Shown: positions 59,214 through 62,669, counted from the first letter of the whole stretch. The stretch: DNA of 63,762 nucleotides, filler included, from Hyphochytrium catenoides (GCA_900088475.1; 6 parts of 6 records of this genome joined end to end with filler, not necessarily neighbours in it); one strand, 5' to 3'. Program-made: numbers and translations. Notes: generated by a model from the sequence alone, not told the origin.

Positions 59214-59731
59214 NNNNNNNNNNNNNNNNNNNNNNNNNNNNNNNNNNNNNNNNNNNNTCTCTATACCTCACTCACACAGACCTGTCAAACACACTCTCTC
59301 CTCCTGTGGATCTTGTCAGTATCTCTTTGCCTTCTCATCATACCTTTTCAAATATCAGGGTGATTACTAAGAAATGATTCACTAGTATGCAGTGTATCGG
59401 ATAACTAGATGTACCGGTATAGAGCCTCTAGATTAATCAAGAAAAAATGATAACCAGGAATAGATGAGAATCAAAGAGAAGGAGAAGAAGAGTCAGATAA
59501 CCAGTCCATCAACTCAGACCCAGATCCCGGAATATGTTGAGATTAAACTGGCCTTGTACAGTCAGTCAGAGAGTATTCCGGAATAAGGGGTTGATTAGTG
59601 ACCTTCTGCACTTCTTGTGAAGGAAAGAGCCAGAAAGGGTGTTGACGAAGGATATCTTTCTGTCTCTCTCTCTCTTCTCTCTCTCTCTCTCTCTCTNNNN
59701 NNNNNNNNNNNNNNNNNNNNNNNNNNNNCTT

Positions 59732-59766
<35 letters not shown>

Positions 59767-60239
59767 TCCTCTCTCCTCTCTTTTGAACTACCACCTCGTT
59801 CGTAGCTCGGAAGTTGGACGGTAGGATTCTCATCGCATTCTCCATAGTGGTAGATGTTCAATCATACTTTCTGATTCTGTGATGACCTTCAAAAGGCAGC
59901 CGTCGACGTAATGTCAGCACAGTCGGCCGCTCCGTACCGATCTTTGGCCAAGGATGATGATGGACTAACCTTCTGAGACAGTCAGGCCGAGAGTGACGAG
60001 GAAAGAGAGCTACTCAAGATGCAGCTTCTAACTGTCTTTCACACCGTCTGCGGCTGGGCCAACCGTGCAAACAGATAGATTCTGTGCCAAAGCAATCATC
60101 TCTTCCACCCGCCGCCTGACAGTTGTCGGTCACTCGCTTTTCCTCCTAGCGCAAGCAACATCAACAGCTTTTCATCCCAGCCGCCTCTTCCCTATGCTAA
60201 GCCGCGCACGTCCAAGGTCTAGTTAGCTCTATCTTAAAC

Positions 60240-60764
60240 ATGGCTCCTGCATTTGACAGCGCAAAGTCTGGCATCACGAACGGCGTGAAAGGCTGCGCGA
60301 AGGTTTTGAAAGGCTTCAGAGACTTTGTCCTTCGAGGAAACGTGATAGATTTGGCAGTTGCTTTGGTGGTCGGTAATGCCTTCACAGCGCTTGTCACCTC
60401 CTTTGTCACAGCCTTCGTCACCCCGTTGATCGCTCTCATTGGAGGGGAGAGAGATTATACGCAGCTGGCCTTCACAATCAATGGCACGCTCTTCGGATAC
60501 GGGCTCTTCCTCACAGCTTTGATCACCTTCATGATCATCGCCTTCGTCTGCTATTTCTTTCTTGTCCTGCCTACCAACACGCTGCTAGACAGAGTGAAAC
60601 AAGTGACAACTAAGGAGTGCCCTTACTGCTGCTCCAAGGTGCCCATGAAAGCTACGAGGTGCCCGCAATGCACCTCTCACCTGGACGCAGCAGAGCAGAG
60701 ACAGACCGTGGTGATCGATAAGATAAATGAAGCTGGCAAGGACTATGTCGCCTACACAGACTAA
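60240..60764 (+). CDS. mscL: Large-conductance mechanosensitive channel MscL with C-terminal double CxxC zinc ribbon, intronless
   Basis: S1 helix and TM1 LKGFRDFVLRGNVIDLAVALVVGNAFTALVTSFV...TPLI; TM2 YGLFLTALITFMIIAFVCYFFLV; tail KECPYCCSKVPMKATRCPQCTS. Confidence 0.96.
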   Translation: MAPAFDSAKSGITNGVKGCAKVLKGFRDFVLRGNVIDLAVALVVGNAFTALVTSFVTAFVTPLIALIGGERDYTQLAFTINGTLFGYGLFLTALITFMIIAFVCYFFLVLPTNTLLDRVKQVTTKECPYCCSKVPMKATRCPQCTSHLDAAEQRQTVVIDKINEAGKDYVAYTD

Positions 60765-62341
60765 AGTCCTAGATGTGAGATAAAACAGCGAGAAACCAAG
60801 AAGGAAGAAGTCGCTCCAATGCCCTCTCATTGTTGCTCTTCAGGACCTTACCATGCTAGGAGCAATTGCTCTCTTCTCTCTCTCTCTCTCTCTCTTTGTC
60901 GGGCAGCCAACGCTACTGCTCAGTCTCTGGTCTAACGAGCTATAGGGATGTACTCCTAGCTCCGGGCGTAGCTCCCTAACTGCGCCTTCTATTTATGATA
61001 GAACAAGTATAGTGACGTCCAAAGCCATGCTTTAAAGCTTTTGCTAAGTCCTTGCTTTAATACCATTCTGCTGTGCCCACGCTGCATTGAGTTCATCGTC
61101 AAAAGAGCCATAAAGAGACACGAAGTTTACTAAGTGCAATAAAGGCAGCCCTTCTCTCTGGCAGGCAGTGTGTCCCTCTTTGTCCGCATGCTTCTCTTAC
61201 AATCGACTCTTGTCTCCGTCATTGGAGGCTTCTTTTCCAAGCTCTTCCGGCTTACGTCCTCTGCTCTTCTTTGCAGTCTTCCCTCCTCTCAGGACTGATG
61301 GCTCCCTCTTATTCTTTGTTCTCTGCCCTGCTCCCTCACTTCTTCTAAGCCTGTTCCTGGACTTTCATCCATCTTTCTCTCTTCCTCGTAGCCGCAAGAG
61401 CGGCAGCCGTGGTTCGGGGTAGCTATTTTACGAAGGTAGTATCTTAATGTTGGAAGACCTCTCTACGGCTTTGGGCACAAACCTCTGGCCAGAAGGGAGA
61501 GAGAGCCAGAGAGGGAATGGATAGGAGAGAGAGAGGAGAGAATGGGGGAGAGAGAAAGAGAAGGAGGGAGAAAGTGCTAACAAATTAATAAGAGGAAACA
61601 TCTCGCTGGCACTCATCAACAGGTGGCGATGGATGTATGTAGTGTGTGAACACCCTTGAAACTCTCCATCGTTGGAGAAAAAGTTGAAGCTTTACGACCG
61701 TACGAGAGAAAGATAGAGACGAAGAGCCAGAGAGAGAGAGACACAGGCAGCAAGAATATACAAGGAAAGAGAGAGAGCGAGGACCTACGAAGAAAGACGG
61801 TCCTTGGGAACGTTTGAGCTGATGGATGAAGTGCTTGATTATCGAACTATGGTAGGACGGAAGGATAAGGAAAACTGGAAAGAAGATGTCCAAGACTGTC
61901 GTCCGCCTGTCTTCGTGCCCTGAGGATGGCTGGTCGAAGAAAAGGGCACCGCAGTGAGAGAGAGCTACCAGCAGTAGTTCTACGCTACACTTTCTGTCCC
62001 ATCTCTCTTGGTCACCTCTCCTTTCATCATGTCTCTCTTCCAATGTTAATCTCTCTCATCTCTGCGCTCTCCTCCTTATGGTCTCCTCTTCTCCTCCTTC
62101 CTCCTCTTGTTCGTGCTCTCTCTCTCCATTCTGTCTCTTTCTTTCTTGCTCTCCATCTTTTAATTCTTCTCTCGCTCGCTTCTCATCCCGCCCTCGCGCT
62201 CCTTCGCTTGGCTCTCTTTCGATTCTTTCTTCTTCTCTCTGGGTGTGGATTCCTTCCCCATCATTGGTCAGCGAGGAGGGATCAAGGACATCAGGAGAGN
62301 NNNNNNNNNNNNNNNNNNNNNNNNNNNNNNNNNNNNNNNNA

Positions 62342-62383
<42 letters not shown>

Positions 62384-62669
62384 AAAGAGAGAGCGAAGAG
62401 AGAAGAGAGAGGCAGTGGAGTCAGAACAGCTCATCACCAAGGGACACGTGTCGGCGCATCAATCTTCTGACTCTCAATCGTGACCACTCAGCCAATGACC
62501 TGCATCTCTCGATGAGCTTACCTGGTACATAGTACCTTACTCTGTGTTGTGCTCACCCACCGAATGGGATAAGAAGTTTTGTTCGCATGACGGATTGGTG
62601 CGTTGTAGTTGTTAGGTTAGTCATCNNNNNNNNNNNNNNNNNNNNNNNNNNNNNNNNNNNNNNNNNNNN

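Follow-up and report, generated by a model that had tools for sequence, protein, structure and literature searches.

A zinc-ribbon MscL gene of Actinomycetes-type ancestry in the Hyphochytrium catenoides assembly

Introduction

In the MscL family as known from Mycobacterium tuberculosis and Escherichia coli, five subunits form a tension-gated channel whose pore is lined by the first transmembrane helix (TM1) and shut by a hydrophobic constriction. MscL is a textbook force-from-lipid channel, and what is known of it comes almost wholly from bacteria; a subtype with a C-terminal zinc ribbon is common in soil bacteria. Here we describe an MscL gene of this zinc-ribbon subtype at positions 60240-60764 (plus strand) of a 63,762-nucleotide (nt) stretch of Hyphochytrium catenoides DNA (GCA_900088475.1; six records joined end to end with filler, which counts toward the length), hereafter the window.

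We estimate with a probability of roughly 0.8 that this open reading frame (ORF) is a working zinc-ribbon MscL gene of a eukaryote-like genome, descended from an Actinomycetes-type bacterial gene, with a channel activity and an oligomeric state that would, by analogy, be those of its characterized relatives. The literature offers little on such proteins: no paper of the library searched was found to treat MscL together with a zinc ribbon, and a search on eukaryotic MscLs (fungi, oomycetes and Chlorella) returned nothing but a passing mention of a fungal MscL-like channel.

Results

The gene runs uninterrupted from ATG to stop and encodes 174 amino acids (aa) with no internal stop codon; the coordinates of its parts and surroundings are collected in Table 1. 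Its product matches the Pfam MscL profile PF01741 over residues 23-123 with 105.5 bits against a cutoff of 27.4 (E 3e-30), scores 86.7 bits against a cutoff of 71 for TIGR00220, and aligns with the M. tuberculosis MscL structure 2oar over residues 22-117 (E 2.4e-22); scores for the narrower NCBIfam PRK equivalogs were below their own cutoffs. These results confirm an intact MscL of the zinc-ribbon subtype. The initial annotation, made from sequence alone, had proposed an intact, intronless MscL with a motif string close to that of M. tuberculosis and a cysteine tail known from a subset of bacterial MscLs; the ORF and its profile score bear out the first point, the 2oar alignment reproduces the second, and the third agrees with our finding a ribbon tail in 406 of the 430 bacterial-type top matches collected.

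The start context is Kozak-like, with an in-frame stop 13 codons upstream, and no Shine-Dalgarno-like purine run was seen upstream of the ATG. Within the piece of the assembly that holds it (59258-62625, ~3.4 kb), the MscL ORF is the single convincing gene: we rejected the other ORFs as low-complexity translations of CT/GA-rich DNA with no Pfam match, and took the sole Rfam match, to MIR408 (20.9 bits against 64, inside a TC repeat), as due to chance. Tandem Repeats Finder (TRF) reported a 12-nt unit present 2.7 times within the coding sequence (CDS) at 60391-60422, encoding an FVT-x-FVT stretch at the end of TM1; because bacterial relatives carry the same peptide, this repeat is not a recent expansion.

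An AlphaFold2 (AF2) model built from a 60-sequence alignment (mean predicted local distance difference test score, pLDDT, 78) places an amphipathic S1 helix at residues 17-31, TM1 at 34-68, a beta-hairpin loop at 77-86, the second transmembrane helix (TM2) at 88-119 and a knuckle pair at 124-147, followed by a poorly ordered tail, and its top Foldseek match is 2oar_A. Hydropathy peaks at residues ~38-60 and 86-110 and a hydrophobic moment of 0.6-0.7 across residues 14-23 accompany this layout, in which both termini would lie on the cytoplasmic side, as in the family. The residues of the TM1 pore motif (R32, G33, N34, D37, L38, A39, G45 and F48) are conserved in the alignments, and the presumptive gate residues L38 and L42 align with M. 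tuberculosis L17 and V21, the second of these positions having changed from Val to Leu. The last part of the leader, residues 17-22, is predicted to extend S1 by about six residues; Cys19 (60294-60296), which lies in this part, is kept in the ortholog described below. In the external loop, residues 81-83 (60480-60488) form an N-x-T sequon, NGT, which reads NKT in the ortholog and NGS in many bacteria; it could be glycosylated if the protein enters the secretory pathway, though it lies near TM2.

The cysteine motif of the ribbon spans residues 127-144 and consists of CPYCC, ten further residues and CPQC, within the subtype pattern of two CxxC pairs set 8-16 residues apart, with Cys127, Cys130, Cys141 and Cys144 as the four presumptive ligands and Cys131 as an extra cysteine. 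Among the 60 aligned sequences C130, C141 and C144 never vary, and C127 is kept in 90% or more; the module is modelled at a pLDDT of ~90, superposes on zinc fingers of the RanBP2/NZF type with a root-mean-square deviation of ~1 Å, and has a weak match to the Pfam DZR family. The usual C-terminal helical bundle is absent, because the Pfam MscL match ends at profile position 104 of 123, and the C4 ribbon, a putative zinc-binding module directly after TM2, appears to take the place of this cytoplasmic bundle. The bundle is missing across the whole zinc-ribbon subtype. Truncation studies have led to its not being considered essential for MscL gating (6ctd is a truncated M. tuberculosis channel), so its loss is a difference between subtypes and does not exclude these proteins from MscL. 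Beyond the ribbon, the tail is modelled with low confidence except for a short helix at residues 157-165.

The closest relative of the window protein, P0001, is also 174 aa long and is 83% identical to it end to end; it is encoded at L001:89-613 on a 625-nt metagenome contig and was the only close relative among 5.8 billion protein clusters and 1.84 billion exhaustive-search representatives. Scanning metagenome contigs for nearer orthologs returned only bacterial-type relatives, at most 46% identical, and no longer contig of the P0001 lineage, and L001 is too short to give the gene context of the ortholog. P0001 retains both the leader pattern MAP..SAKSG..GV.GC and the tail ending DY(V/I)AYTD. 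Codon comparison with L001 gave a nonsynonymous divergence (pN) of 0.106 and a synonymous divergence (pS) of 0.675, a ratio of 0.16; by part, pN/pS was 0.14 in the core, 0.11 in the ribbon, 0.26 in the leader and 0.22 in the tail. Upstream of the ATG the similarity collapses (31% identity over 88 nt). The constraint on each part, together with the loss of similarity upstream of the ATG, indicates that leader and tail are coding and selected, and the near saturation of synonymous sites that the two host organisms diverged long ago. In P0001 the first zinc-ligand cysteine is replaced by Trp (WPFCC as against CPYCC), a loss for which the adjacent extra cysteine of the CC pair may substitute.

Among named proteins, the window protein is best matched by those of Thermomonospora umbrina, Actinomadura and Spirillospora (57-58% identity); identity rises to 61% for proteins from metagenomes. 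When prokaryotes were scanned with each species represented by a single genome, the zinc-ribbon subtype turned up in Actinomycetota, Acidobacteriota, Chloroflexota, Dormibacterota and bacteria of the candidate phyla radiation, and an ESM Atlas feature search returned bacterial MscL clusters only. In the nearest bacterial proteins 3-4 residues precede the FRDF/FKKF motif of S1 and 7-9 follow the ribbon match; the window protein has a 22-aa leader and 28 residues at these places. Apparent N-terminal extensions in bacterial tblastn matches were rejected as mostly read-through of non-coding DNA 5' of the true start.

For phylogeny, a first quick tree that included untrimmed long proteins was poorly resolved and was replaced by a careful run on trimmed sequences, of which the best-curated version has 71 rows and 166 columns (LG+C20 PMSF). 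It contains a starred clade of 30 rows (support 96/88) made up of Actinomycetes lineages, the window protein with P0001 (100/99) and a 17-row eukaryotic clade, and within it the window pair has Thermomonospora, Actinomadura and Spirillospora as its sister group (86/80, below the starred level). The gene thus probably descends from an Actinomycetes-type bacterial gene, as the tree supports, and the label "actinobacterial-type" given to it initially was well chosen, Thermomonosporaceae being nearest.

Zinc-ribbon MscLs are also encoded by a range of eukaryotes. Cluster look-ups and gene contexts identified them in three Micractinium species, Chlorella ohadii, Nannochloris 'desiccata', a Gregarina sp. 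transcriptome and Porphyridium purpureum, to which are added three chytrids (Polychytrium, Polyrhizophydium and Geranomyces) and picoalgal metagenomic contigs whose neighbouring genes are eukaryotic (ING/PHD, Tsr1/Bms1, SNF2, WD40, EGY3 protease, MGDG synthase, Aph-1 and GH47 mannosidase); the earlier view that eukaryotic MscL is limited to some fungi and oomycetes was too narrow. Public records already list several of these homologs as MscL. The 17-row clade (100/98) comprises C. ohadii, the three Micractinium species, Nannochloris, the Gregarina sp. transcriptome and the picoalgal contigs. Identity between the window protein and eukaryotic-type proteins is 38-47%. Leaders and tails of the latter run from 14 to 286 residues, and most green-, gregarine- and Porphyridium-type proteins have a leader cysteine, typically in a Gly-Cys pair 8-9 residues before the Phe of FRDF; in the window protein (Gly18-Cys19) the cysteine lies 7 residues before Phe26 of FRDF, one residue closer than the -9/-8 of the clade. 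The chytrid leaders have no cysteine. A CxxCC first knuckle, as in the window protein, occurs in 3 of ~390 bacterial-type and ~10 of 30 eukaryotic-type proteins.

Some further features of these relatives were noted. Comparison of L002, L003 and the contigs of P0161 and P0180 showed that gene order around algal MscLs is kept, with an ING/PHD gene downstream in two lineages (P0157 and P0180) and an EGY3-type M50 protease 2-5 kb downstream in the P0271 and P0161 lineages, which points to vertical inheritance within those algae. The predicted 399-aa Polyrhizophydium stewartii protein (P0276) consists of two full MscL units, each with leader, channel and ribbon, fused head to tail, and its halves are mutual closest relatives in the trees (100/87 and 100/98). 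The 90% cluster of Nannochloris 'desiccata' P0193 contains, besides proteins of MscL length, 360-aa models and entries that bear the name ribosomal protein L24, which suggests fused or mis-split models of MscL and a neighbouring L24 gene.

The surroundings of the window gene are of a non-bacterial kind. The initial annotation had described (CT)n-type flanks and no bacterial neighbours, and both descriptions held on TRF analysis and in the absence of any other Pfam-matching ORF; GA-rich arrays follow further downstream of 60895. GC content is 0.52 in the CDS (0.65 at third codon positions, GC3) and 0.48 in the flanks. Actinomycete genomes are high in GC, and the composition of the gene, far from theirs and close to that of its flanks, argues against a contaminant. 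Sigma-70-like promoter sites were at the level of shuffled sequence, and terminator-like sites (4, against 1.4 ± 1.1 expected) showed no clear excess.

Independent support comes from Logan contigs of three runs of one study (X1, X2 and X3; samples from 2011 and 2017), placed on 59729-62299. A 1143-nt contig spans 59782-60864, carries CT repeats at both ends and includes 458 nt of non-coding 5' DNA. The X1 and X3 contigs end in the upstream TC repeat; at the downstream repeat the X1 contig ends inside and the X2 contig stops before it, at 60850. In X1 the gene contig has a depth of 30.5, where most single-copy contigs of the flanks have 27-33; in X2 the corresponding figures are 381.9 and 326-386, so that gene and flank agree in two runs whose absolute depths differ twelve-fold. 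Part of the downstream flank is present as two haplotypes, distinguished by linked single-nucleotide polymorphisms and small insertions and deletions, including an 8-nt deletion at 61144; together they reach the depth of the gene contig, and such a near-even split fits a diploid or two-strain source, not a bacterial contaminant. Comparison of the reads with the window over the gene shows four variant positions. Three of the changes are synonymous, in keeping with functional constraint, and the fourth is Q143L, inside the CPQC knuckle, with Leu in X1 and X2. The two runs also disagree with one another at individual sites, which together with the window sequence makes three genotypes or more that contain the gene. 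Composition, start context, flanks, depth, haplotypes and the constrained extensions all argue against a bacterial contaminant.

Elsewhere in the flank, one contig each in X1 and X2 skips 169 nt of a GA-rich stretch at 61546-61716, with 11 other letters instead, and depth there climbs several-fold, to as much as 399 and 6346; the cause is either a dispersed GA-rich repeat or a structural variant associated with the repeat.

Table 1. Coordinates of the MscL gene, its parts and its flanking features in the window.
Feature	Position	Strand	Evidence
Complete intronless MscL CDS, stop codon included	60240..60764	+	ORF call, Pfam, TIGR00220, 2oar match; purifying selection against ortholog L001
Start context AAACATGG, A at -3, G at +4	60236..60243	+	Direct sequence reading; in-frame stop 13 codons 5'
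N-terminal leader, residues 1-22, absent from nearest bacteria	60240..60305	+	Leader comparison, AF2 helix, pN/pS 0.26
MscL core, residues 23-123: S1, TM1, external loop with beta-hairpin, TM2	60306..60608	+	Pfam, 2oar alignment, AF2, Foldseek
Putative C4 zinc ribbon, residues 124-147	60609..60680	+	Cys conservation, pLDDT, Foldseek, weak Pfam DZR match
C-terminal tail, residues 148-174; ends DYVAYTD (ortholog DYIAYTD)	60681..60761	+	Alignment, AF2, pN/pS 0.22
Upstream (TC)n microsatellite with N assembly gap 59697-59728	59655..59781		TRF rows 59655-59696 and 59732-59781
Downstream (CT)n microsatellite, contiguous in window assembly	60869..60895		TRF
Two-haplotype flank stretch, about half depth each	61144..61393		X1 14.4-16.7 of 33.6; X2 186-203 of 396-424

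Discussion

Our analysis favors a functional eukaryotic copy of an actinomycete-derived channel gene, and several points weigh against this reading. The gate residue equivalent to M. tuberculosis V21 is Leu (L42), and channel activity, oligomeric state, zinc binding and acylation are all inferred. Strict C4 coordination may not be essential, because the ortholog has Trp in place of the first ligand. No contig of the runs bridges either CT repeat, and linkage to the outer flanks is that of the original scaffold, with its N gap upstream; in the read-depth comparison suggested when the gene was first noticed, gene and most flanking contigs are equally deep in X1 and X2. We looked for an RNA run holding the stretch and found none, and the 3.4-kb piece may belong to another eukaryote in the sample rather than to the organism on the label.

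Given actinomycete ancestry, the question becomes how the gene reached its present host. One could envision that it belongs to an older eukaryotic zinc-ribbon MscL clade, probably as an early, slowly evolving branch, which arose through one transfer from an actinomycete to a eukaryote followed by vertical descent, by spread among eukaryotes (e.g., with algal endosymbionts) or by both, in which case leader and tail were inherited; we put this at a little under even odds. The 17-row clade is strongly supported, includes contigs with eukaryotic neighbours and falls within the same starred Actinomycetes clade as the window pair. When the pair was forced to join it in the 71-row set, the log-likelihood (lnL) rose 1.95 above that of the free tree (approximately unbiased test, p-AU 0.59), and in a 79-row set the free tree itself joined the pair to the green-type clade, at 66/35. 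The two also have in common traits not found in bacteria, namely a Gly-Cys leader near FRDF and long tails, the bacterial "leader" matches being tblastn read-through, and the CxxCC knuckle is far more frequent on the eukaryotic side. Uniting all 13 eukaryotic rows, those of the chytrids among them, in one clade was not rejected either (p-AU 0.31). However, the free 71-row tree pairs the gene with Thermomonosporaceae, its identity to bacterial proteins (57-61%) exceeds that to eukaryotic ones, it lacks signatures of the clade such as an RCKxCC second knuckle, and a short cysteine-bearing leader beside a helix at the membrane surface could be convergent.

Alternatively, the ancestor of the window and P0001 organisms could have received the gene independently and directly from a Thermomonosporaceae-like actinomycete, with leader and tail gained later, an explanation that we take seriously and would nevertheless bet against. 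The sister relationship to T. umbrina, Actinomadura and Spirillospora (recovered in a quick tree as well, at 82) favors it, as does the 79-row set, in which forcing the pair to join Thermomonosporaceae raised lnL by 6.5 (p-AU 0.63). The highest identity to a named protein (58%) is to that of T. umbrina, with a near-identical stretch where TM1 ends and the loop begins; the second knuckle reads RCxxCTS, as in bacterial-type proteins, and the finding of one ortholog among 5.8 billion clusters suggests a narrow host range. Under such circumstances, however, a Gly-Cys leader at a like spacing from S1, a CxxCC knuckle and a long tail, all found in other eukaryotic MscLs, would each have had to arise independently, and support for the sister relationship is below the starred level, with the alternative equally likely. 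The AU tests thus do not separate direct bacterial transfer from membership of the eukaryotic clade. By either route the event is old, because synonymous sites are saturated relative to the ortholog and composition is fully ameliorated.

These results bear on the horizontal acquisition proposed in the initial annotation. Its premise of actinomycete ancestry in non-bacterial surroundings stands, and the phylogeny that it called for returned the Actinomycetes clade; the direct route is not secured, since nesting of the pair within a broader eukaryotic clade fits equally well. The terminal extensions that it described are likewise real relative to the nearest bacteria (22 aa and ~27-28 aa), and the leader is unlikely to be a private later addition because a cysteine leader is common to most of the eukaryotic clade. 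The window gene is a further member of an under-described eukaryotic zinc-ribbon MscL group, not a one-off. A bolder and rather unlikely extension is that most or all eukaryotic zinc-ribbon MscLs (of green and red algae, apicomplexans, chytrids and this organism) derive from one actinomycete gene, that the cysteine leader was gained soon after entry, its cysteine being S-acylated and anchoring S1, and that the window gene is the least-diverged survivor. If this were true, S1 acylation would represent a eukaryote-specific tuning of the gating threshold of a bacterial channel.

As a working channel of the MscL type, the protein would assemble from five subunits around a pore lined by TM1 and shut by a hydrophobic constriction at L38/L42. 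As tension in the membrane rises, the amphipathic S1 helix, which would lie on the cytoplasmic leaflet, would sense it; the helices would tilt and a wide, non-selective pore would open, releasing solutes in hypo-osmotic shock. By lengthening S1, the leader would bring the conserved Cys19 to the membrane interface; S-acylation there could reinforce the lipid anchor. A signal for sorting or for binding a partner may lie in the conserved tail. The membrane served might be the plasma membrane, the contractile vacuole or an organelle.

A more specific version of the last possibility appears improbable, namely that the 22-aa leader serves as a cleavable presequence for import into a plastid or mitochondrion and that the channel protects such an organelle, bacterial in origin, rather than the cell surface. 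In its favor, Ala, Ser, Gly and Lys abound in the leader, basic residues outnumber acidic ones by 6 to 2 among the first 33 of the protein, and many relatives are found in photosynthetic eukaryotes, in which plastid MscS-like channels are known (PMC11085791). Such a presequence would, however, be very short, and chytrids and the gregarine have leaders too; moreover, the C-terminal third of the leader is a predicted part of the S1 helix and its cysteine and spacing are conserved as in a segment that is retained rather than removed, which makes cleavage less likely. Least credible of all is an artefact, either a 1.1-kb gene segment scaffolded between host repeats or a whole 3.4-kb piece from a co-sequenced eukaryote: it would fit the independent contigs that stop unbridged at both CT repeats, the N gap inside the upstream one, the lack of an RNA run and the absence of the window protein from a collection of 15 billion proteins, yet it sits poorly with gene and flank depths that match in two runs, a gene contig with 458 nt of non-coding 5' DNA between CT repeats, a composition unlike that of actinomycetes, a leader and tail of eukaryotic type, and the recurrence of the gene in 2011 and 2017 samples with strain-level differences.

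The preferred reading, a constrained eukaryotic copy of a bacterial valve, does not overturn current understanding; it adds evidence for repeated or ancient adoption of this valve by eukaryotes under osmotic shock. This copy combines closeness to actinomycete sequences (57-61%) with a ribbon in place of the bundle and a conserved cysteine leader on what would be the tension-sensing helix. That leader offers a testable idea, namely lipid modification of S1.

Set against described systems, the protein resembles M. tuberculosis MscL (2oar, 6ctd) in its S1-TM1-loop-TM2 order, in the pore motif RGN-x-x-DLAVA-x-x-x-G-x-AF and in the tension-gated pentamer that it is expected to form, and differs from it in lacking the helical bundle, in its C4 ribbon, 22-aa leader and 27-aa tail, and in having Leu42 for V21. 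The zinc-ribbon MscLs of Thermomonosporaceae (T. umbrina P0002, Actinomadura P0007 and Spirillospora P0012) are closer, with the same ribbon, a near-identical end of TM1 and start of the loop, and 57-58% identity; in contrast to the window protein they are 134 aa long, begin 3 residues before the S1 motif and end 7 after the ribbon, and the GC3 of 0.65 of the window gene is set against the generally known high GC of actinomycetes.

The MscLs of green algae and a gregarine (Micractinium conductrix PSC74947.1, Micractinium spp., C. ohadii, Nannochloris 'desiccata' and Gregarina sp., EukProt EP01054) are like the window protein in combining channel and ribbon with a Gly-Cys leader, a long tail and, frequently, CxxCC, and share an Actinomycetes-rooted clade with the window pair; they differ in being only 38-47% identical to it and in their own RCKxCC signature, which the window protein does not have. 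Those of Porphyridium purpureum (KAA8491616.1) and the chytrids Polychytrium aggregatum, Polyrhizophydium stewartii and Geranomyces variabilis are likewise eukaryotic zinc-ribbon proteins with leaders, and the chytrid leader pattern (K-x-G, then G-V, then V-x-K before the S1 Phe) resembles that of the window protein. They lie elsewhere in the trees, however, on long branches, the chytrids with a Chloroflexia-type group (97/90), and the chytrid proteins carry a large insert in the external loop and have no leader cysteine.

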